Notes: generated by a model from the letters alone, not told the origin. Shown: positions 50,030 to 64,000, counted from the first letter of the stretch. The stretch is DNA of 64,000 nucleotides from Monocercomonoides exilis PA203 (GCA_001643675.2 LSRY02000002.1:2294001-2358000); one strand, 5' to 3'. Translations and numbers: made by a program.

Positions 50030-52824
50030 TCAGCCATTAAAATTTGCAAACATATTGTTTTCTTCCCCGCCCATTTCTGCATTCTCATTGTCATTTTCGC
50101 TTTCTGTATCTTCTTGTTGAGAATTATGATGAGCAACTAACGAATTGTGGTTGCGTCTCAATTCAAAGACAATTATAATAACAGAAAATATAAGCACGTA
50201 AGTGTCCCAAGAAATATTGCCAAACGCTTTCGATACACGATGTGTCATAGAAGAGTATATTTCTCTATAGTCTGTAAAATATATCATAATAATCACATAA
50301 TACATCACATGCAAAAACAGCTTCATTCTCTTCACTTTAAGCATTGCCATTCCGAAAAGCTGCTGAATGACCTCTTTGCGCTTCTTGGTTTCCATGGCAG
50401 TGCTGTGGAAGCAATTTCGCTGAAATGTGTCATTCACAGAAGAAGAAGACAGCATGTCTGGCTCTGGAATATTCAGCTCAGTCATAAAGACAGAATACTT
50501 TTCAGAATTCATTCTGACTTCGTCTCCAAAATCACCAAATTCCAACATTTCATCTAAGCTATCATTGGTGCTGTTATACTCTGCTGATTCTGATTTCTCC
50601 TTTGTGCTTACATTTGTGTCATGTTTGCTATTCGGTTGTCTGACCACATCGCATCCCCACCGAACTCCGATCTCTTTCTTTGCCACCATCAACGCCAGAC
50701 GAATCAGCGCATCTCCTTCGCCAACAAGCCGATGCTCCACTTTAATCGATCGTATTGTCGGAGAAAGCATCCAATGCGACAGCGACTTGACCCACTCAAC
50801 AAGATTGATCGACTTCTGTGGGACAGCCCGAGCAATCTCATTCATGTTCTTCTCCCTCGAATATGGCCCTTTGAACCTGAATGGTGTGATTGACCGCGAT
50901 GCCTGCACATACATAAAGGCAGCTTGCCTGTACAGCTTCAGCGAGCGCAAGAAGTCTCCCAAAAGCAACAGCGCTGGATGTGAATTGTGCTTAGCAGCAA
51001 CCAACAAGAAGTCGATGCCACGCATCCCTCCAACGCACGGCTTGTCTCCTCCTTCAGACTTCATACACGCCTCTCCAATCTGCGTCAGTATCTCCACATT
51101 GCCTTGCATAGCCAGACTGACGGCTTCCATGAAGTCGCTCCACACTTCAGTTTCCTTTTTATTGTTTTTTTCATTCTTTTTGTATGTTTCTATTTGCTTT
51201 TTTAAAGCTTTTTGCGATTTTTCTATTAAAAACAGACAGAATAAAAAATACATTGAAATTTGCTCAAATGTTTCATGAAAACAACTAATTGATGCACACT
51301 TGAAAACTGCGAAGGCAGGCTGTTTTTGTTTCTGCTCTGCATGTTGATGTCTGTTTCGATTTCAGAATATGAAGCATTTGATTTCTGGAGTTCTTCCATC
51401 AATCCATACTCCATCCAAGCCTGCTGCGCTTTGTTGTGCTTTCGAATAAGCCCCATTTTCACAGTGTTGCTAATTCCATGTGCTGATTTGACAAAGCTCT
51501 TTGTGGTGTTTGGCGAAGCAGACGACACCATTTGCAGCAAGCGAATGGCTTCTTTGCACAAATGGTCTCCCTTTTCGTACCAATTGCTGCCAGAGAAGAA
51601 GTTAAAGCCGTTGTAGAAAGACAGCTTTCCATAATTTAATTCGTGCATCATGTCTTCGCTTATTTTATACCCTTTCGCTTCCAGCCGATGTTGATAGATA
51701 AGCATCGCTCGTCGTTGAAGCAAAATGTTTGCGTAATGGTATGTAGCTGTCAAATGCTCGTTTAGTGCTGCTTTGTTTAACATCTGCTCGGCATAGTCCA
51801 TATTTCTCTTAACTGGCGAAGGGCCAATCAATGACAGTATTCCTGCAAGATACATTCCTTCATATTCCCCTTCGTTTGCTGCTGCTCTTGCCAGTTTGTA
51901 TGCGTGTCCATAATCATGCTCCATTATTTTTAAAAACGCCAGACCAACATATGACCTTGTATTTCCTTTTGCAATTCCTGCCACAAAATGTGCATGAGCA
52001 TCTTGCAGGCTTATTTCTGTCCCAAGGCCATACATGTACATGATCCCTAGAAGGCAATGTACTCTTCCTGATTTTTCTGGCAAAGAACTTAACGATTGAA
52101 ACCCTGTTTCAAAATCACTTAAGAAAAGTCGCTTCTCGTATGTTGACATCGAATTTTCCTCCACAAACCCGAGAGATTGAATTAGTGAAACGAATTCGTT
52201 ATATTTTCGAGCATTTTTAACATTGATATTTAATCCTTGCTTTACATCGATGCAACTGTCATTGGCTTGTTGTTCGACACATGGAGGAATAACAAAAAGC
52301 CATGACGTTTCGATATCGGGAAACAAAAAGCTTTTTTGGCAGCTGACTAATGTTTGCTCTGATATTTCCGAATATAGTTGTGCAGCATACTCGCAATCTT
52401 CTGAAAACCCTCCAAAATTCTGAGAAAATGGTGATGTAAGTTGGAATGCAAGTAATTTTTTTGCTGTTAAACTATGCTCTGCTGCAAATGCATAGTACAT
52501 CATTGCATTCCCCCAATTTATTGAAGAAGAATTTCGAAAAAATCCGTTTTTGAAGCCGAGTCCAATACTATTAAAAAGGCCTGCATATTCTTGAGATTTT
52601 GCATGACCATTTGCAGCTCCTTCTTCCAATGCTGATAAAATACTTGAATAATCTGATGTTGGTGATAACTGTTGAAAATTGATTAAAAAGTGTTAATTTC
52701 AAAAATTGGAAAAGAAATAAACATGAGTCAAGAAATTTTCAGATTCATTATTCAATTGATGAGTTCCAAATTCCTCACAAAAGCAAAACTGCAAGATCCA
52801 TAAAAGTGTGGATAATATTCTCAT
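50030..52824 (-). CDS. SEL1L: SEL1L/Hrd3-like ERAD adaptor with Sel1-like repeats, ~887 aa
   Basis: Exons 52824..52723 (signal peptide MRILSTLLWILQFCFC), 52668..51300 and 51222..50030. Motifs AMMYYAFAAE...EDCEYAAQLY, LGIMYMYGLG, AANEGEYEGMYLAG and ALLLLGD; C-terminal SWDTYVLIFSVIIIVF TM helix resembling SEL1L WDLYL. A further short in-frame intron near 50270-50310 is possible. Confidence 0.75.
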
Positions 52825-53518
52825 TTGTAATTTATCTCAAAAATCAAATCACCTGAAACAATACACAACAATTTTTAGAAAAAAAAACATGTTTCATTTT
52901 TCAAAATACGTTCGATCAGTAAATCGTTCTTATAAAATAGTACTTCAAACCAATAAATAATTTTCTGTTTAAATCACTAAATTTCAGCAAATATTCAACA
53001 TAAAAGTTTTTGATGTCTAACCATATTAAATTATTTCTTATTAAAATTTCTATTGTGGAATGTTTGCAAAATCCACAATTATCATTCAGTGTTTGGAATT
53101 CAAAGCAAAATAACTATATTATTATTAATCAAGTTGCATTAAATTCACAAATGTTTTCTTAAAGATGAAATATTTATTGAAAAATGTTCGAGCATTTCAA
53201 TCTCTTTCACATTTCTTTATTAGTATTTTTGCGCATTTAAAAAATAGAAAATGTGTATTAAAAAAGAAAAATATATCTATATGATTAGTCTTTTTATAAT
53301 TCCAATTAATTCTGTTTTTGAATATTGAAATTGAAAAAATAAATCCTAATTAAAAAATTCATTTTCAGTCAAAAAATTTTTTTCATTTGCAATTTTGTTG
53401 TTATTCTTATAGCTATCAAACAATAAAGAAAATAAAAAAAGCAAAAAAAAACTTAAAAAAATAGAAAAAGATGATCATTGATCCCATTGCGTCCTGATTT
53501 TGTCAACTGGATTAAATA

Positions 53519-56500
53519 ATGTCGACAAAAACAGAGGAAACTCGTTCGGTATCATTATCGCTTGCATCAGAAAGTTCTACGGCAAGTGGTTTTGCATTGA
53601 CAAAATTAGGTGTTGCTGATGAATGGTATGCTCACATTAATTTTTCTAAAATATTTTTCATTTTTTCAACTATTCTTCACTATTTTGTTGAATAGGTTCT
53701 TTTCGTTGTTACTACCATTGCATCGGGTATGTGTATTTGCATTTTTCTCAGTTAATTGAACAAATATTTTTGTTGAATGAATATAGGCACAAATAACTAG
53801 TTTTTACTTCTGGCTTTTACAATTAATAATTTTTTCATTTCAATGTATTGCAATCAATTTACGATATAATGTTTGGCCAATGACTGGAGCGTTTCAACAC
53901 GGATGCCTTTCATTTTTTGGGTATGAACGTTTTGATTATCAATTTTAATAATGCAAAATTCATTAACGTTAATTGTATTCAAGATATCTTGACTTTTCCA
54001 TTTCATGGAGTAGTGACATTTTCGTGATGGTCATGCTTATTATCGTTGAATTGATTTCACTTTTATCTATTTGCGGACTATTTCTTCTTCCTGTAATTGG
54101 TCGGAAAAATCTTCGTTTGCACAGGGAAATGTCACGCATAATTGTCCTTGGATGTTCGTTGTGCTCTACTTTATTTGCAATTCCAATAATTAATGTTGAA
54201 TGCGGGCATTTTTTGTGTTATCTTGGAGGGGAACATTCATCACCTCTTATTTCCATTGATTGCCAAGGCTCTGCTCATTCTGTTTTCATTATTATAGGGT
54301 CAATTACAGGAGTTTTGCACGTTGGAATGTGCTTCTTTTTCAGATTATTTATCTTTAATTATAATTTCCATCATCTTCCTGAAGCGACGTTCTCTACACA
54401 GTCAGGGTTTTTTTCAGCACTCAGTACACTTTTACCCCAAGTTGCTGTTGTTGTTTCGCTTTGTCTAAGCACTGTACCATATGCCGCTCCCGCAATTTGT
54501 TTGGCGATCTTCTTGCTGCTAACGTTGATAATTGTATTTTATCAACCGTTTTTCCATAAACGTGGAAATTCTCTCTATGCAGCAGCATTTGCCTTTCCTG
54601 TTCCGTTCTTTGTGATGAGTATGGTCTGCACTGCTATCTTTCCATCTGCAGCTGACATTTCCGAAGGCAGACGCGCTCCGCTTTCAGATTCGCAGTGGAA
54701 TCTTTATGCATATTCATGCTGGATAGGATTTGCTGTGTTGGCTCTCGCATTCAGCATTTTAATGTATTTTCTGGCTTCTGTCAGAGCGAAGAAGCTGTGG
54801 GTTGTTGGTGAAGGCGAAGAAATCCCAGAGCTGCCTGTGAAACACAAGCAAGAATTGCAGCGCGCAATCGAAGTGCAAACACATGTGCCGTCTTCTCTTC
54901 AGATGCCTCAGCCAATTTTGCATCCAGCACAGCCATCGTCTCCTTTTATGTCTTCGCTTCCATCAACTCCCACATCTTTGAGCCAACGCGGAACACCTTT
55001 GCGGCTAACAAATTTGGGTGTTACTCCTTCGAATGAGCCATTGCCGATTCATGTGCCCCAATCGCTGGGGCCGGGGTCGAACAACACATCAAATGGAAAG
55101 CCCTTTTCAGTTTCGCAGAATCATCTGCTTCCTCATTCAAACTATTCTCCCTCAATTCAATCGTCAGAACAAGAAAAGGGGAAGAAGCCTTTAAAGCCTG
55201 CGCGTGTGGTGAAGAAGTGGAGAAGCTCTTTTGCGTGTGAGCGAGCCATTCGCTTTCTCTCATTGCGGTCGCTTCGATGCGAACACCAATACATTACATT
55301 GGCTGGTCAAGTGCTCAACTATGGCACAACTAAATTCCCCGATTCGTGTTCTATTTGGATTGAAAGTGCGCTGTTCCACCGCTACTTTTCGCACAATTTT
55401 ATGAAAGGTGTGGAGGCGCTGCGTGTGTCGAAGCAGTGCATCCCTTCGATTGTCCAGCGGTGGCTCATCCATGTTGTCACCACAGAGATGGAGAAGGATG
55501 GAGGAAGACATCGCTCCACTTGGTCGAGTGTTGACAGCTCGTCATCTGGAAACCAGTCAACAAGCGCCTTCCGCACGGGGATGACAAAGGCCACTAAAAG
55601 CTATGAATCTGCCAAGTATTTGCTCAACCAACTGTTTATCATGCTGATGAAGGACAACATCGATGTCAACCGGTCCATTCGCCTGCTCGACTTGATTGTG
55701 GAGCACGACATGACTGCCAACGATGAGTTTACTGCTCTGCTGGCTGTGTATCCGAACAGCACCCAGCTGCTTCGGGCATACGGAGTACATCTACGCGACA
55801 TTGAGCGGGATGACGAAACTGCAATGTCTCTTTTTTCGATTGCACAGCAGATTGAAGATGATCTCACCACCATCTCCTCCATGTCGCAGGAGACTGGCTC
55901 CATCGCTGCCTCGCAGATGGGTGTGCCAGGCTCTGGGCGCGAATTTAACTTTGAGCGGGCCAGCTACATCAGCACAGACAGCCGACGCTCGGCTTCGCAT
56001 CCAGACACTTACGCCTCGAAGAAGAAACAGATCACCAAGAAAAAGAGGAAGAAGTTTCGGCAGGGAAGAAGTGGAGCAAATGCAGCTGCTGCTCTGAAAC
56101 TATTTCAGGACAAAAAGAACCTGCTTCCATATTTTTATCCAGTTATGTTTATTTGTGTGATCACCATTACTGCAGGCCTTGTGATTGCATTTGTGGAATC
56201 TTGGTCAGCATTCTCGCTATCAGTAAACACTGTATCCACATTGGATTCTGTATCAAAGAGCCAAATGAACTTGTATGAAGAGATGCTTTTCTCGAAATAT
56301 TTTCACTCTCAACTGATTTACTTTCCTACACATGGAATGCCGGATGGCACTGAGTTCATCCCATCTATTCAAAAACTGGAAGGTTTGATTGGCTCACGAC
56401 GGGGAGTTCTTGTGGAGCACATGAAGACTGCATACAAATTGGCAGCTAATGCAGAAGAGCGCTCGATGTGGGAGGTGAAGTCCATCAACGTTACCTTCAG

Positions 56501-59500
56501 CTCCACTGTCGGTGATCAAGTCACTGGAATGTGGAGTGTGAAATGCAACCTGATTGACGCATGCGCCACAGCAGCAAACAGTGGCTGGGATTTGCAGCAA
56601 TATGATGTGACTGGCGAGACACCTCCGCTTTCCACAGGATACTATTTCATCAGCGCAAATGTGCCAATTGCAATGATGGAGACGATGAAGGCGCTTGCCA
56701 TTGTTACCATCCAGAATGTGGAGAAGAAGGCTCAGGAATCTGTGTTTATTACTCTTGTTTTGGGGATTGTTATAACAATAGTCGATATTGCTGGACTTCT
56801 CATTCAATACGTTCTCACCATTCGTAAGTTGAAGAAAGAGCGTCACTCGATTGTGTATGATTTCCTGACAGCACCAAAGAACAAAATTCTGAAGCTGAAG
56901 ATGCGACTGGAGGAGGCAGACAAAGACCACGAGGACGATGCACTGCGGTGGGACCAACGAATGCGGCAGAGCCGGTCAAGAGACTTATTTGATACTACAA
57001 CAGACAGCACAGCAAGATCAAAGCGAAACAGGGATGATGCAGACGACTTATCGGAAATGAGGTCACATCCTCAATTGTCGCAGATAAATGAAGAAAAGTC
57101 GGATGGGATTGAATCACCAGAGCATTCTCAGAGCATGATTGACGATTCACAGGTTGATGTCAGTTTTCAAAAGGTGCTGAAAACAGTGGGAATCGATCTT
57201 AGCGATCAGCCTGGACCAAAATTCCGAACGATTTCATCAACCGATGAGGCAACGGAGCAGCAGCGCGAACCTGTTGATCCAATGGACAGAGCCCCGTCAG
57301 CAGCATCGTTTGATGCTCAAACGAATCAAGGATATCAAAGGAACGCAGTATCATCAATGTATCAGACACGATCTTCTATTACTTCATTTGGAAATGACTA
57401 TTCTGCATTGAAAGTATCACCCACAACAAGTGCAACGACTTTTGCATCTGCGTATGGAAATGTACCAAACATGAAAACTGCACCCGCTCCCACGCCTTCA
57501 CCATTCCAGAGTGCTTTGTTCCAGCAAACGCAGCAACAAGTCGGACAGCTGCAGATGATTCCTCATCCAAACGATCCAACTGGCCAGGCAGCTTTGATGA
57601 TGCAGGCGCAATCTCAACAAGCAGACAGTCAAAGCCCATCTCTTATTCCTTCGTTGTATTCTGTACTCACTCAAAATGGATCGATTGCGAATCAAATGCC
57701 TGGAATGCCACTGAGCGATGATCGAGAGCGCTATTTGTACGAAGAACAGAAATCTGAAAAGACCCACAAGCATCACCATGGTAAGCATCAACAGTCGAAA
57801 AAGCATCGTTCAGAAAAGGATGGAGAGCAAGATGCTATGCAATATCTTACGACTTCCATGCCGTCTTCTCCTTTGGCACCAGGTTCGTCCAATGCTGGCC
57901 CAGAACTCTCTAATTCTGCTGGTGGAGATAAGAATGACTTGGAGAAGGAGAGGCTCGCTCAGGAAGAGGCAAATGAGGAGAATGAAATGAAACTTGAAGC
58001 AATGGAGGAGCAAGACAAATTGGCAGATTTGGAAGAAAAGGTAAAGAAAAACAACTCATTTATTCCATGTTCTTTCTATTTCCGTGTCGTTGTTGGATTG
58101 ATATTTATCATCACATTCTCAATTGTATTTTATTCTATTTCGAGTGTTGCCATCACATCCGTGTCGAAGCCTAATGGAGCCATTTATCTTGCGTCCTTCC
58201 GAACAGTTATTGTCGAACTTATTGCACTTCTTTCAATGAGCATCGTTACACCTTATTACACAATGCCTGATAATGCAAAGGATATGATACACACCACTGC
58301 CACTTGCCCTCTCTGGGACGGGCTGAATCATTTGTCCAACAATCTCACCGAAATTCAAAGGCTTATGAAAAGAACCGAGACATTTTTCTCGTTGCTTCAT
58401 CAGAAAGTGAAAGAAGGCGGAGGCAAAAACACTGGAGGTGCAATCACAGGTGATGATATGATAGATTCTTTGGATACTCCACGAACTTATGTAGTTGACT
58501 CGGAAATCAACAAACTCATGCTCGATTCTGCAGAATGTTTTCCTGTGGAGTCGCAAGCTGATTGCAACAACAAAACACGTTTGTATGGAATGTCTGGGAA
58601 TTTCAGTGGATTGGATGGTCTTATAAATACTTTTCTTTCATCTTCGATTGTCATTGCAAGCGACAGGAATCCAAACATTCTACTTGCGAATAATTCTCAC
58701 ATACAAGTTATCAATAGCTTGACAATGAATGATTTAAAAGGAGGATTGCTGAAGTACTCTCAGATTCTCAGCAACGAGCAAGACATCTCTATCAATGCAT
58801 ACAACTCTCTTTTAATTGCATTCTTTGTTCTGAATATCGGTGCAATTGCGCTTAGCTTCTTTGGCTGTTTCCTGCAGACGCGAGATCAGCTATTCAACAT
58901 TGCGAAGAAGACGGTGAAAATACTCGATTTGGATCCTCGCAACGACCAGACGCTGCACATGATGGAGTGGAGCGAGCAGCATATGTCTGATGTTCCTCGG
59001 CTGGACAATGCGCATCAGCAGTGCTGCAACTATGCACTCGATCTGCTGGACAGCGTTGAGAAGATCGAGATTGACGTGCAGCAAATTAAGAGTGTGTCGC
59101 ACGGCGCCACAACGTCAGATGTGGAAGAGCGCAAGGCCAAGCACATGATTGAGCTGAAACAGAAGCTTAGATCGTTTGTGGTTGCGTTCTTCCTTTCGTT
59201 CTCAGATGAGGAGGTGATGATGAGGAGGTTTTCTGTCTCGCACAAGCACCGGAAGAAGCACTTTTCAGAGCACATCAACCAAGTGCGAAAGATATGCAAG
59301 TTTGTTATTTCGGCAGCGCGCGAAGGTGTGTCGTCGCAGTCAGTTGTGGAGAACACAGGAATGTGGCTGTCTGACCACGTGGCCAAGACAGACAAAGAGC
59401 TGGGCACGATTTTGATGGGAAAGGCTCCTCCGTCGGAGCTTGAACGGGATGTCTCACTTGATGTTATACCTGAAGAATCCATCTTTCCAATGTCTTTCAT

Positions 59501-59582
59501 TAACTTTCTGCAGTCTGATGATGCGAGTCTTGTTGATAGGAATTTGTATGAGTCGTTTTGCCACACTTTTCATCTGAAGTGA
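53519..59582 (+). CDS. TmcB-like multi-pass membrane protein with TPR region and C-terminal hemerythrin-like domain, 4 exons, ~1956 aa
   Basis: Exons 53519..53625, 53696..53726, 53787..53920 and 53984..59582 total 5871 nt, in frame. N-terminal bundle of ~8 TM helices (YQPFFH..GN); TPR-like YGTTKFPDS and FTALLAVYPNSTQLLRAYGVHLRDIERDDETA; two TM-loop-TM units; then the hemerythrin signature. Confidence 0.8.
58960..59410 (+). other. Bacteriohemerythrin-like di-iron four-helix domain within the TmcB-like CDS
   Basis: MEWSEQHMSDVPRLDNAHQ ... SFSDEEVMM ... HFSEH ... WLSDHVAKTDKEL matches the W-x8/9-(I/L)DxxH ... HFxxEExxM ... HxxxH ... WLxxHIxxxD pattern, except for one His-to-Ser change. Confidence 0.85.
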
Positions 59583-60252: not shown

Positions 60253-63200
60253 TTATGAACGGAAAAGATTGGAGCGTGCAATTGTGGAGTCTGAAAATAT
60301 CTCTGAATTCGATGAAGGAGGCGGAAGGAGAGCAGAAGGAGGAACCAATGTTGTGGCAGTCTGTGTATTTGTTGGATAAAAACCTGAAGAAGAGTCTGCT
60401 ATTATTGGAGAGATGGGAAAAGCAGATGAGGTTGTTAACAATGCATTTGTAGCCTTTGACGAAGTGGTTGTCTGCAACGAGAATAAAGTTGATGATAATG
60501 CAGGTGCTGTTGCAGCCGCTGAATTCAACAGATTCGAAGGAGCAACTAGATATGTCTGATCGTTTTTCCCTCCTTTTTCATTTGACGTTTCCTCTTTTGA
60601 GGTCATTCCCATTGTTGCTTTGTCTTTTTGTTCTTTTCTAAGTCCAACAGCTGCTGCAAACTGCTTCTTCAGCATTTCCCATCCGCTGTCTTTCTTCTCT
60701 TTCCTTGATTTTTCTTCTTGTGGAGCCTCATTTTCTTCTTCTTCTGATTGTTCAAGCTCTGCTCTTCCTGAATCTCCTAGTCCCAGACGCTGTGAAATAA
60801 CTGACAGAATATGAGAATAGCGTCGTTTTCTGTTCTTTTCAAGCTTTTCCTTGCCAATCCGCTTCATCTTCTCTTCCCATGCTGTGAGTTCATTAAACAC
60901 GGATGAATGAGAAACAGGAGAGCTTTCAAACTTTGGTATTTTTAATCCTCCGCTGCGAATGTGGTGCTGCCGATGTTTATGCTGCTTCAGTTTTCTGTTA
61001 TGGATTGCATAGCTTTTCCCTTTTGCAGTCTGATTCTCTGTTGTCTGATTTGATCTGGAATTGACATTTAATTCACTCCCTGTGTCACTCGATGTTTCTG
61101 ATTCAGTTTCTCCGAGAAATTCGCTTTTGTCCTTTTTCTCATCATAGTTTTTCTTTTGTTTTTGCTCATTCGATAAACCTTCATTTTTCTTGATTTCTTC
61201 ATCTTCTTCTGAAATAGCAGGTTCCGTGACGCTCTTTCTATGATGCCTTTCCTCTTTCTCTCTCAGCCTCTTTTCATTCAAATGTTTGTAATACCTCCTC
61301 TTTCTTTGTCTGTGCCTCTTCTTCCTCCTGTTTCTCCTTTCCTTCCTCTTCTTCACTTCTTCAACCAACCTCCTTCTCTGTTCAAGTGCATCAAATACAT
61401 CATCCTCATCGGGACATCTCTTCTTCTTTTTAACTCCGAAATCTTCGCCTTCTGCGCTGCTTGTCTCATCTCCAATCACAATCCCATCGAGCACATCCAA
61501 TCCTTGTGTCTTGCCTTTGGCTGCTGCACTCGAAGGAGAATCGATTTCTATCTGACTGATATCCTTTTTTGAAATATCTTCAATTGGTTCATCCATTTTG
61601 TTCATTGGCTTCAATTCATTATTGTCCTTTTCTTCTTCTTCATCGACTTCATCCTCATCATACGGCGACAGTGATGGAATAGACAGCTGTCTCTTGTTTT
61701 GTAGCTTCTTCTTCACAACAGCAAGTGCATGTGCTGTGTGATGATGTGGTGAAAGCGACGGTGGAAGAGACTCCGCCATCGACATCGATGCTGAAGTTGC
61801 ACCTCTTCCACCCAAAACTGGCTGCTTTTCTGAAAGTTGCTGAGATGATGGCGCTTGAGTCGCAGATGATTGCTTCTGGCTCAACGGCTTTAGTGACAGC
61901 GCAGGTGTCTGAATCTGTTCAGCTGCTTTGTTTCTTGGAGGCGAAAACTCGGCAAACAGATCATCGTCGTCTTCTTCGTCTGCCTCATTCAATTGGATGG
62001 GGTGGAGTGCATCTCCTCCATTCAAGCGCCTTACCTCTTCTTTCTCCTCCTCCAGCTTTTGATTCTCTTTGTCTGCTTTTATTCCGAGTTCAAACAATTT
62101 TGCTCTTTTTCTTTCTTCTCTCTCTTTCTTCTCCTTTGCTGAGATGGCTTGTCTGATCCTCTGTACTTCTGTTAGATGAAGCCGCCACACAGAAATTGAG
62201 CGTGATGCTGAAAAGAGATGGTGTGATTTGATGTCTGAAGACGAAGAAATAGAAGAAGTTGTGGAAGATGTGAATGAAGAAGTTGAACAGGGAGAAGAAG
62301 ATGCTTTGGAATCAGAAGAATGTGCTGAAATATCTGAAAATGATGAAGAAGAAAAAGGAGAAGATGATGAAAATGTTGATGAAAGAGAAGAAGATCGTGA
62401 ATGTGTTGAAGACAGGAAAGATGAAGGTGATGGTGATCTGCTTGATGAACGAGATTGAAAAGAAGAAGAAGAAGAAGAAGAGTCGAATGAAGATGTGTTG
62501 GATGAAGTTGAGTCAGGTGAAGATGAATGGCCAGACTGTCTGTGCTGAGCATCTGAAGAATGAAATGAAGAGTTTTGAGTGTGTCGCTTTTTGTGTTTGT
62601 GAGCAGGCGAAAAGGAGGGAGAAAACGAAGAATGCGACTCAGAGTCAGAGAGTGAGATAACAGAAGCAGACAAAGACGGCTTGTACTTCAATGAACACTT
62701 GCTGCTTTGTGAGGAAGACTTCTTCAGCGAAAGAGAAGAGCCAGCAGACAGGTCAATATCATAGCTCATTCCAGACGGTGTGAGCTTTGCCTGTGAAAAT
62801 GGATTCCCGGAGCTTGCAAAGTTTGACGGTGACAGCGACGACAGAGAGGACGATCCAGAAGCAGAAGAGCCGAGAAGAGTGTTGGGAGGTGTGGGTGGAA
62901 CAGAAAACAGCGAGAAGGAGCCAGAAGGGTATGTCATTTCTGAAGCGTGTGGAGAGAGGGAAGAGGCAGACGGGGCAACAGTGACTGAACGAAGGCCCCG
63001 GCGCTGGTGCGCGAGAGAGGGAGACATCATCATCGAAGAGGCGGTGGAAAAGGAAGCGAAAATGTTGGTTGAGGTTTGGAGGGGTGTTGAGGGGGGGAGG
63101 CTGGTTCCGGTGGATTGAGATGAAGGAGAAGAGAGTAATGAAGAAGAGGAAGAGGAAGAGGAGGAATAGGAGGAAGAAGAATATTGGGATGAAGAGGATG

Positions 63201-64000
63201 ATAATGATGATGTTGTTGTTGTTGATGAAAATGAGGGAGAAAGAGAACCAGAATTGTGAGAAGAAACCTGAGAAGGGGCAAAAATAGGGGAAGAGAGCGA
63301 AGGAGCAAACTGAGGTGAAAGTGAAGTTGGTTCTTTGTTCTGAAAGGAAGAGTATGAAGTGTGCAGAAAAGAGGGCACAATTTGAGGTTTTGAAGGAAGC
63401 AGAGGGAGAGTGAGAGTGGCAGAAGGGGAAAGAAGAGGGAAAGGAAATGAATTTGATGACTGAGGAAAAGAGACGAAGGAGCTGTAGTTAGGATGGTGAG
63501 AGAGAAATGGACTGGAAGAAGGCACAGAAGAAGAATTCTGAGGAGAAGTGAAGTGGAAAATGGACTGATCATTTGAAGTGTGTGTTGCTGTTGATGATGA
63601 TGATGAGGAGGAGGAGGAGGAAGAAGAAGAAGAAGAAGAGGAAGATGGTTGCATTGTGAATTGAGTGTGTGATTGTGTCTGATAAGCAGCAGGAGAAGAG
63701 AGAAAAGAAGGATAAGTGATTGAAGTGGGTAAGGGTGTTATCACAGACGAAGGAAGAGCAGAAGACGAAAGGGACGAAACAGATGATCCATTGTTAGCAT
63801 TCATGCCCTGTGTTGATTGTGTGTGTGGATCAGATGTTAAAGAGTGAAGTGAAGATGAAGGGAGAGCGAAGAGAGTGGCAGCAGATGTGAGCACAGCTGT
63901 TGAGGTAGAGAGAGAATTGACTCCGTCGCTTTGGTCGAGCTGGCTGGCTGAGGAAGGATTGTCTGAGTAGATTTGGTGAAATGGCGATGATGATGTGCCA
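60253..64000 (-). CDS. Large Ser-rich/charged low-complexity hypothetical protein; 5' end lies beyond the window
   Basis: The frame of ORF 60253..63894 stays open to the window edge, and the listed start is an internal GTG. Poly-Ser tracts, coiled-coil-like E/K/R segments and an NLS-like basic cluster (RRNRRKKRHRQRKRR). No recognisable domain. Confidence 0.7.
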   Translation of the reverse strand, partial: GTSSSPFHQIYSDNPSSASQLDQSDGVNSLSTSTAVLTSAATLFALPSSSLHSLTSDPHTQSTQGMNANNGSSVSSLSSSALPSSVITPLPTSITYPSFLSSPAAYQTQSHTQFTMQPSSSSSSSSSSSSSSSSSSTATHTSNDQSIFHFTSPQNSSSVPSSSPFLSHHPNYSSFVSFPQSSNSFPFPLLSPSATLTLPLLPSKPQIVPSFLHTSYSSFQNKEPTSLSPQFAPSLSSPIFAPSQVSSHNSGSLSPSFSSTTTTSSLSSSSSQYSSSSYSSSSSSSSSLLSSPSSQSTGTSLPPSTPLQTSTNIFASFSTASSMMMSPSLAHQRRGLRSVTVAPSASSLSPHASEMTYPSGSFSLFSVPPTPPNTLLGSSASGSSSLSSLSPSNFASSGNPFSQAKLTPSGMSYDIDLSAGSSLSLKKSSSQSSKCSLKYKPSLSASVISLSDSESHSSFSPSFSPAHKHKKRHTQNSSFHSSDAQHRQSGHSSSPDSTSSNTSSFDSSSSSSSFQSRSSSRSPSPSSFLSSTHSRSSSLSSTFSSSSPFSSSSFSDISAHSSDSKASSSPCSTSSFTSSTTSSISSSSDIKSHHLFSASRSISVWRLHLTEVQRIRQAISAKEKKEREERKRAKLFELGIKADKENQKLEEEKEEVRRLNGGDALHPIQLNEADEEDDDDLFAEFSPPRNKAAEQIQTPALSLKPLSQKQSSATQAPSSQQLSEKQPVLGGRGATSASMSMAESLPPSLSPHHHTAHALAVVKKKLQNKRQLSIPSLSPYDEDEVDEEEEKDNNELKPMNKMDEPIEDISKKDISQIEIDSPSSAAAKGKTQGLDVLDGIVIGDETSSAEGEDFGVKKKKRCPDEDDVFDALEQRRRLVEEVKKRKERRNRRKKRHRQRKRRYYKHLNEKRLREKEERHHRKSVTEPAISEEDEEIKKNEGLSNEQKQKKNYDEKKDKSEFLGETESETSSDTGSELNVNSRSNQTTENQTAKGKSYAIHNRKLKQHKHRQHHIRSGGLKIPKFESSPVSHSSVFNELTAWEEKMKRIGKEKLEKNRKRRYSHILSVISQRLGLGDSGRAELEQSEEEENEAPQEEKSRKEKKDSGWEMLKKQFAAAVGLRKEQKDKATMGMTSKEETSNEKGGKNDQTYLVAPSNLLNSAAATAPALSSTLFSLQTTTSSKATNALLTTSSAFPISPIIADSSSGFYPTNTQTATTLVPPSALLPPPSSNSEIFSDSTIARSNLFRS

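Follow-up and report, generated by a model that had tools for sequence, protein, structure and literature searches.

We analysed a gene at positions 53,519 to 59,582 of a 64,000-nucleotide stretch of the genome of the oxymonad Monocercomonoides exilis PA203 (GCA_001643675.2 LSRY02000002.1:2294001-2358000; hereafter the window) and found that its long product, of receptor-like layout, ends in a hemerythrin domain of bacterial type in which the second of the five metal-binding histidines is replaced by serine. The reading that we favour, with a probability of roughly 55%, is that the gene encodes a receptor-like protein whose cytosolic hemerythrin-fold tail, with a metal site one histidine short, acts as a gauge of iron, redox state or oxidant and not as a reversible binder of O2. 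Oxygen, oxidant and iron sensing in anaerobic protists are poorly understood, and M. exilis is a model eukaryote without mitochondria; because all 59 hemerythrin loci detectable in its genome belong to one receptor-like membrane family, this family is a concrete and testable candidate for such sensing.

An open reading frame (ORF) scan of the window (contig C14) gave a stop-free frame of 1869 codons on the plus strand (53973-59582). Residue numbers below are those of this frame (adding 87 gives the numbering of the complete protein), and the searches and models used this long exon or parts of it. GC content was 40-53% in the coding sequence and 20-30% in the flanks. RNA contigs from four metatranscriptomic runs of a single 2024 study, labelled 'synthetic metagenome' and with a plausible, unconfirmed origin in the polyxenic M. 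exilis culture study PMC12308965, each contained one spliced transcript, starting at 53504-53514 and extending beyond 59499. These contigs differed from the genome by no letter and defined three GT..AG introns of 70, 60 and 63 nucleotides (nt). Read from the first ATG at 53519, the four exons contribute 107 + 31 + 134 + 5596 nt, a coding sequence of 5868 nt or 1956 codons, which reproduces exactly the length of the spliced gene proposed in a first-pass annotation made from the DNA sequence. The public annotation MONOS_957 (1879 amino acids, aa), whose first codon is an ATG inside exon 3, is too short, as it lacks 77 N-terminal residues including one membrane helix, and the RNA contigs show two more coding exons upstream.

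The hemerythrin domain begins about 30 residues past the last membrane helix. When the last 230 residues were compared with curated profiles, the NCBIfam bacteriohemerythrin profile NF033749 was matched with E-values of 1e-8 to 3.5e-9 (35-37 bits; cut-off 84), TIGR02481 with 3.5e-8 (32-33.5 bits; cut-off 51.75) and Pfam PF01814 with 0.03 (14-15.4 bits; cut-off 25.3). An AlphaFold2 (AF2) model of the tail, based on an alignment of 27 sequences (paralogues, homologues from Blattamonas and Streblomastix, and two bacterial hemerythrins), reached a predicted local distance difference test score (pLDDT) of 92.6 and a predicted template modelling score (pTM) of 0.88, and consisted of an up-down four-helix bundle with the N-terminal loop typical of hemerythrins, with helices A and B extended by an insertion of about 30 residues. 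Foldseek ranked DcrH-Hr and the Methylococcus capsulatus hemerythrin at the top (template modelling scores of 0.80-0.85, normalised to the target, at a root-mean-square deviation, rmsd, of 2.2-2.4 Å, with weak E-values), and VIA-align matched the same two structures with a Z of 14.3 and an rmsd of 1.8-2.0 Å over 127-131 of 130-133 residues. A sequence search of solved structures returned a weak match to DcrH only (E 0.63). On the modelled structure the assignment to the bacteriohemerythrin fold is secure, because the first 14 rows of the VIA-align ranking are all hemerythrins, after which the scores drop to Z 10 with generic bundles. Judged by sequence, the domain is also not a chance match, since 59 loci in the M. 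exilis genome carry it and two of these paralogues exceed the curated NCBIfam cut-off. The hemerythrin signature that the first-pass annotation had placed directly after the last membrane helix was thus recovered by profile, model and structure comparison, with significant NCBIfam E-values at scores below the curated cut-offs.

Classical hemerythrins bind their two irons through seven ligands in the pattern H ... HxxxE ... HxxxH ... HxxxxD, the first and second histidines holding Fe2, the iron that binds O2, and the other three histidines holding Fe1. Six of the seven were found in the target (H1681, E1746, H1763, H1767, H1802 and D1807), with Ser1742 (residue 1829 of the protein) at the position of the second histidine. 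The earlier proposal of a cytoplasmic di-iron sensor therefore stood in part: the tail is of bacterial type and predicted to be cytosolic, but the di-iron site is not complete. In a maximum-likelihood tree of 74 tails, rooted on two bacterial sequences, three clades were distinguished. Clade A (16 rows, support 95) has intact or near-intact sites and includes a Blattamonas 'putative hemerythrin' and a Streblomastix fragment; clade B (23 rows; Shimodaira-Hasegawa-like approximate likelihood ratio test, SH-aLRT, 99) includes the target gene and is made up of 13 M. exilis loci, 8 Blattamonas proteins, one protein from a sequencing run and one from a metagenome; clade C (31 rows) holds mostly half-site tails. 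The second histidine, on helix B, is replaced in 23 of 23 members of clade B. As it is absent across the clade, in Monocercomonoides and Blattamonas alike, its loss is dated by the tree to before the split of these two genera. The other six ligands are kept in every member but one, which has Gln at the third histidine, at a mean identity within the clade of 28%; about 17 columns are conserved at 85% or more, and these include all six ligands together with the signature Trp and Asp.

This pattern points to a conserved, under-coordinated metal site, and not to a classical O2 binder. It also bears on whether the fold might be a metal-free relic, a four-helix bundle retained for structure or dimerisation alone. 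The lost ligand, the profile scores under the cut-offs and the loss of both Fe2 histidines in the larger sister clade would all fit such a relic; the retention of six ligands among the very few near-invariant columns, at such low overall identity, is what a structural role alone would not explain. Because the loss of the second histidine is old and the remaining six ligands are strongly constrained, we consider a relic very improbable, and the same two observations argue against classical O2 binding.

The nearest known system is DcrH of Desulfovibrio vulgaris (2avk, 2awc, 3waq), also a membrane receptor with a cytoplasmic, C-terminal four-helix bundle of the bacteriohemerythrin type. DcrH-Hr was the best structural match (Z 13.9-14.3, rmsd about 2 Å, over nearly the whole DcrH-Hr chain), and its N-terminal Trp loop and W-L-x-x-H-x-x-x-x-D stretch align with those of the target. 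However, DcrH is a bacterial methyl-accepting chemoreceptor with seven ligands, and with HAMP and methyl-accepting domains between membrane and hemerythrin, whereas the target is eukaryotic, has 12 predicted membrane helices, a tetratricopeptide repeat (TPR) platform, two ectodomains and six ligands, and its hemerythrin follows straight after the last helix; no segment gave a Pfam match to HAMP or methyl-accepting chemotaxis protein (MCP) domains. The M. capsulatus bacteriohemerythrin (4xpx and mutants) shares the fold (Z 14.3, rmsd 1.8 Å, 127 of 130 residues, 20% identity) but works as a soluble, free-standing carrier of O2 and has a complete di-iron site.

These neighbours raise the alternative of a sensor working as DcrH does, in which a complete di-iron site would bind O2 (or NO) reversibly at Fe2 and signal the binding of the ligand. 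Besides the structural ranking, it would be favoured by the existence of seven-ligand paralogues in the M. exilis genome and by the Leu ahead of the fifth histidine in W-L-x-x-H, which the alignment to DcrH-Hr shows to be conserved in the target and which, prompted by the L114 mutant entries of the M. capsulatus hemerythrin, we take to line the O2 pocket. Since one of the two Fe2 histidines is Ser here and is missing throughout clade B, with no conserved replacement, reversible O2 binding of this kind cannot be assumed, and we give this alternative a low probability for the target. A further histidine one turn before the third ligand was considered as a compensating ligand and rejected: it occurs in the two bacterial outgroup hemerythrins as well, it is absent from several clade members, and helix geometry would place it on the Fe1 side.

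Turning to the scaffold, hydropathy analysis identified seven membrane helices at residues 16-267 and one more in exon 3, together the N-terminal membrane bundle, followed by single helices at 723-741, 926-944, 1372-1390 and 1613-1631. A weaker peak at 1407-1425 corresponded in the AF2 model to the second long helix of an ectodomain and not to a membrane helix. The protein is accordingly predicted to cross the membrane 12 times, in a receptor-like layout that keeps the N- and C-terminus in the cell interior. The sole Pfam family found was TPR_TmcB, the TPR of the TmcB/TmcC family (E 6e-12 to 1e-12, 46-48.6 bits; gathering cut-off 27), and no PAS, cyclase, kinase or MCP domain was detected by Pfam in any segment of the protein. 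These results agree with the first-pass description of a eukaryotic TmcB-type multi-pass protein with an N-terminal membrane bundle, a TPR-like region, two units of paired membrane helices and none of the first three of those domains. The N-terminal bundle matched no Pfam family, and in the Atlas feature search its scores stayed below 0.9 (0.84 for a cluster of TRP channels), which we counted as no evidence. Across 15 full-length homologues the TPR block was the best conserved, followed by the second ectodomain unit and the tail, and the linker was poorly conserved (residues 945-1371; occupancy about 0.5, identity 5-13%, no Pfam family match). The automatic UniProt names of the Blattamonas homologues likewise point to the TmcB/TmcC family. 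Dictyostelium TmcB and TmcC ('tiny macrocysts'), which gave PF25474 its name, have the TPR_TmcB domain in common with the target, and to our knowledge no hemerythrin has been reported in those proteins.

With the N-terminus taken as inside, the 15-residue flanks of the helices in the target contained 30 Lys and Arg residues on the inside and 6 on the outside, and the corresponding counts in 15 homologues were 14-30 and 3-11. All four Cys columns conserved in the family fell in predicted outside loops, two after the third helix and two in the second ectodomain. Because of this charge bias and the placement of the conserved Cys residues, the hemerythrin tail is predicted to be cytosolic, as are the TPR and the linker, and the luminal location that the first-pass annotation had named as one outcome that would speak against its proposal is disfavoured.

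Each of the two units is a membrane helix, an ectodomain and a second membrane helix. AF2 modelled unit 2 (residues 1365-1640, alignment of 25 sequences) as entirely helical, with a pLDDT of 90.5 and a pTM of 0.83, and with both membrane helices extending into long helices of the bundle. In an exhaustive VIA-align comparison with 48,161 chains, the top six matches of unit 2 were bacterial periplasmic four-helix-bundle sensor domains (PilJ, Vc1313-LBD, NarQ, McpN, a histidine-kinase sensor and PcaY) at Z 10.3-11.8, which is under the level at which the tool advises caution, as helical bundles may there match by arrangement alone. PilJ (8wdf), Vc1313-LBD (8bsa), NarQ (5iji), McpN (6gcv) and PcaY (6s18) likewise have a helical bundle between two membrane helices; unlike them, the oxymonad unit has two invariant Cys residues and extra short helices, and it matched no sequence family. 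The model therefore suggests a resemblance of layout, and not membership of these families. Foldseek returned only generic long-helix matches for this ectodomain (flagellins and FlgL, template modelling scores below 0.4), which were discarded as meaningless. The two units may be distant duplicates of one another: hhalign aligned them with a probability of 84.5% (E 7e-6 over 90 columns, in part membrane helix), and BLASTP between them gave no match.

The target is one of many such genes. With the bacteriohemerythrin profile and the tail as queries, 59 distinct hemerythrin loci were found in the M. exilis genome, nearly all within open frames of 1200-3500 codons, at their 3' ends. All seven ligands are kept at 8 of the 59 loci, the fifth histidine is changed to Glu or Asp at 4, the second histidine alone is lost at 16 (including the target gene), both the first and second are lost at 29, and 2 have an aberrant pattern. 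The TPR_TmcB profile matched 69 loci in the genome, and for 57 of the 59 hemerythrin loci such a match lay 3-8 kb upstream on the same strand and in the same frame; the remaining two, both on contig C47, are partial copies almost identical to each other. No stand-alone hemerythrin gene was seen in this genome census. Four cyclase loci were found genome-wide, none of them near a TmcB-TPR locus, and PAS_9 had no match in the genome. The statement in the first-pass annotation that TmcB-like scaffolds usually carry PAS or cyclase domains does not apply here, where 57 of the 69 TPR loci carry hemerythrin instead, and the chimera that it described proved not to be singular but one of about 59 genes in a family common to at least three oxymonad genera. 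The other 12 TmcB-TPR loci, some of them within frames that reach 3804 codons, have no detectable hemerythrin (for example C14:903833, C62:323395, C9:1060887, C16:1084710, C19:828982, C29:815650 and C67:169843).

Numbers of this kind could serve capacity if the hemerythrins were protective, with tethered copies buffering O2, peroxide or iron and shielding Fe-S enzymes. This role was proposed for the hemerythrins of Campylobacter, and in M. exilis it was suggested by the 2019 genome paper, which lists hemerythrin among oxygen-stress genes derived by lateral gene transfer (PMC6759080). The copies ride, however, on large receptor-like scaffolds with ectodomains and, in 57 of the 59, a TPR, an expensive and unexpected vehicle if buffering were the purpose, and in most of them one Fe2 histidine or both are gone, so that O2 would be bound less strongly. 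We therefore regard scavenging as improbable. The hemerythrin reported as an oxygen-stress enzyme of M. exilis might itself be the tail of these receptors.

The hemerythrin fold can also work as a stability switch in eukaryotes, for which FBXL5 is the precedent. Its hemerythrin-like domain (3u9j, 3v5y), a regulatory fold sensing iron and O2, was among the structural neighbours of the target at Z 8.4. By analogy, metal loading would control folding and with it the degradation or trafficking of the receptor, and the conserved C-terminal tail would serve for docking or as a degron. Clades A and B have this tail, about 54 residues long and with a partly conserved N-x-S/T motif, behind the bundle, and clade C lacks it; the tail's conservation and the absence of an enzymatic output domain are in keeping with such a switch. 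FBXL5 differs from the target in being a soluble F-box subunit of a ubiquitin ligase, of another hemerythrin subfamily with another ligand set, and is a much weaker match than the bacteriohemerythrins. As the domain is of bacteriohemerythrin and not of FBXL5 type, and no degron or link to a ubiquitin ligase was found for what is a purely inferential proposal, we judge the stability switch to be quite improbable.

The gauge that we favour would work as follows. The protein belongs to an oxymonad expansion of the TmcB/TmcC-TPR family, laid out from N- to C-terminus as an eight-helix bundle, a cytosolic TPR, two helix-ectodomain-helix units, a cytosolic hemerythrin and the conserved tail, with ectodomains that may resemble membrane-anchored helical-bundle sensor domains. 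The helix-B histidine of Fe2 was lost before Monocercomonoides and Blattamonas diverged, the six other ligands being retained under strong constraint. The tail would still hold a metal centre, probably di-iron, whose second iron would be under-coordinated and more readily exchanged or oxidised. Through its metal occupancy or oxidation state the centre would register how much iron the cytosol holds, its redox state, or contact with O2, NO or peroxide, and the change would be relayed to the adjoining membrane helix with its ectodomain unit, as well as to proteins bound by the TPR or by the conserved tail. What a natural hemerythrin site with six ligands does would be seen by comparing the target with its intact-site paralogues. 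Those paralogues (locus L061 on contig C50, MONOS_2049) and the Blattamonas protein KAK2957477 have the same scaffold, domain position and conserved tail as the target, and differ from it in having seven ligands and in belonging to the separate clade A; two intact-site proteins pass the NCBIfam cut-off.

Several points weigh against this interpretation. Metal binding, sensing and the output route are what we infer, for every member of the family, and the protein has no known output domain in any segment by Pfam. A ligand of the O2-binding iron is missing, and the residues found in its place in clade B vary (S, C, V, A, G, T, M, N) and offer no substitute ligand. The target stays below the cut-off of every curated hemerythrin profile, although its NCBIfam E-values are significant nonetheless. 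The topology was predicted by hydropathy and charge rules only, and the N-x-S/T motif of the tail would be a glycosylation sequon were the tail luminal. The Z of 10-12 for the ectodomain falls in the range where caution is due, and the RNA contigs, from one study, speak for a spliced transcript and not for regulation.

A more far-reaching version of the gauge, which we hold to be unlikely as a whole, is that oxymonads turned a single acquired bacterial hemerythrin into graded classes of metal site (intact di-iron, one-His-short and half-site) distributed over about 59 receptors, and that the class of the target, with an exchangeable second iron, gauges labile iron (or NO or peroxide) and gates a channel- or transporter-like body of 12 helices. 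If true, this would be a eukaryotic sensory system without a described counterpart, and possibly the main means of iron and oxidant monitoring in an organism without a mitochondrion.

An exhaustive HMMER search of the target tail against 1.84 billion cluster representatives gave 38 matches. Those with checkable sources were long proteins of M. exilis and Blattamonas nauphoetae, a fragment from Streblomastix strix, fragments from runs and metagenomes, 32-44% identical to M. exilis paralogues, and a few bacterial hemerythrins at the weak end. Clusters resembling TmcB/TmcC TPR proteins by features were found in Preaxostyla and Parabasalia (Atlas search). Word-based homologue searches with the tail, with the TPR and unit 1, and with the tail of an intact paralogue returned only the query or one M. 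exilis paralogue, and are too insensitive to bear on distribution. Our literature search found no paper describing a TmcB-hemerythrin fusion, and searches on TmcB and 'tiny macrocysts' gave nothing relevant; the fusion is also not mentioned in the accessible part of PMC6759080. The earlier statement that the architecture is undescribed thus holds for the fusion as far as this search goes, but not for the hemerythrin itself, which had already been named in M. exilis (PMC6759080) and in a Blattamonas record. That record, B. nauphoetae KAK2957477 (P0025, 1727 aa), is a full-length TmcB-type membrane protein named only 'putative hemerythrin' in GenBank, a name that may mislead database users toward a small soluble hemerythrin.

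Table 1. Position and basis of the features of the hemerythrin-tailed receptor gene and of the neighbouring open frames, in window coordinates. Residues are those of the 1869-codon frame.
Feature	Position	Strand	Description and basis
Exon 1	53519-53625	+	Start codon at 53519; N-terminal 35 residues, predicted cytosolic, and a split codon; RNA contigs, splice 53625/53696
Intron 1	53626-53695	+	70 nt, GT..AG; joint present in contigs of 4 of 4 RNA runs
Exon 2	53696-53726	+	31 nt; RNA contigs
Intron 2	53727-53786	+	60 nt, GT..AG; RNA contigs
Exon 3	53787-53920	+	First predicted membrane helix (about 53793-53855); internal ATG is the start of MONOS_957
Intron 3	53921-53983	+	63 nt, GT..AG; RNA contigs
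Exon 4	53984-59582	+	1865 codons and stop at 59580-59582; open frame and RNA contigs
N-terminal eight-helix membrane bundle	53793-54773	+	Predicted by hydropathy; two conserved Cys in the loop after the third helix
TmcB-type TPR (PF25474)	55566-55862	+	Residues 532-630; best conserved cytosolic block
Unit 1	56139-56804	+	Residues 723-944; two membrane helices flanking an ectodomain of about 184 residues; predicted by hydropathy
Low-complexity cytosolic linker (predicted)	56805-58085	+	Residues 945-1371
Unit 2	58086-58865	+	Residues 1372-1631; membrane helix, helical-bundle ectodomain with two invariant Cys, membrane helix; predicted by hydropathy
Hemerythrin-fold domain	58950-59417	+	Residues 1660-1815; profiles, alignment, AF2 and structure comparison
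Ser codon (TCG) at the second-His position	59196-59198	+	Ser1742; alignment and codon check, RNA contigs identical
Conserved C-terminal tail	59418-59579	+	About 54 residues; two short helices packed on the bundle in the model, pLDDT 89-98
Neighbouring open frame	51226-52629	-	467 codons
Neighbouring open frame	60253-63894	-	1213 codons; extremely serine-rich, low complexity

Pfam gave no family at E 0.01 for either of the neighbouring open frames listed in Table 1. Some further observations concern individual hemerythrin loci of the genome. Contig C47 has three nearly identical hemerythrin ends with intact sites: L016 near 119 kb, L017 near 471 kb and L018 near 219 kb. Two of them have no TmcB TPR upstream and lie in short frames, one of 522 aa and one of 208 aa that ends in TAG; these two look like recent partial segmental copies or pseudogenes. 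The half-site tails L049 and L050 on contig C37 (about 64 kb and 582 kb) are identical in protein sequence and lie about 518 kb apart, which indicates a very recent duplication. The loci L033 and L040 (C7:382090 and C30:943727) are an aberrant pair of family members: their branch is very long, both have Asn in place of the bridging Asp, and one of the two also has altered third and fourth histidines.

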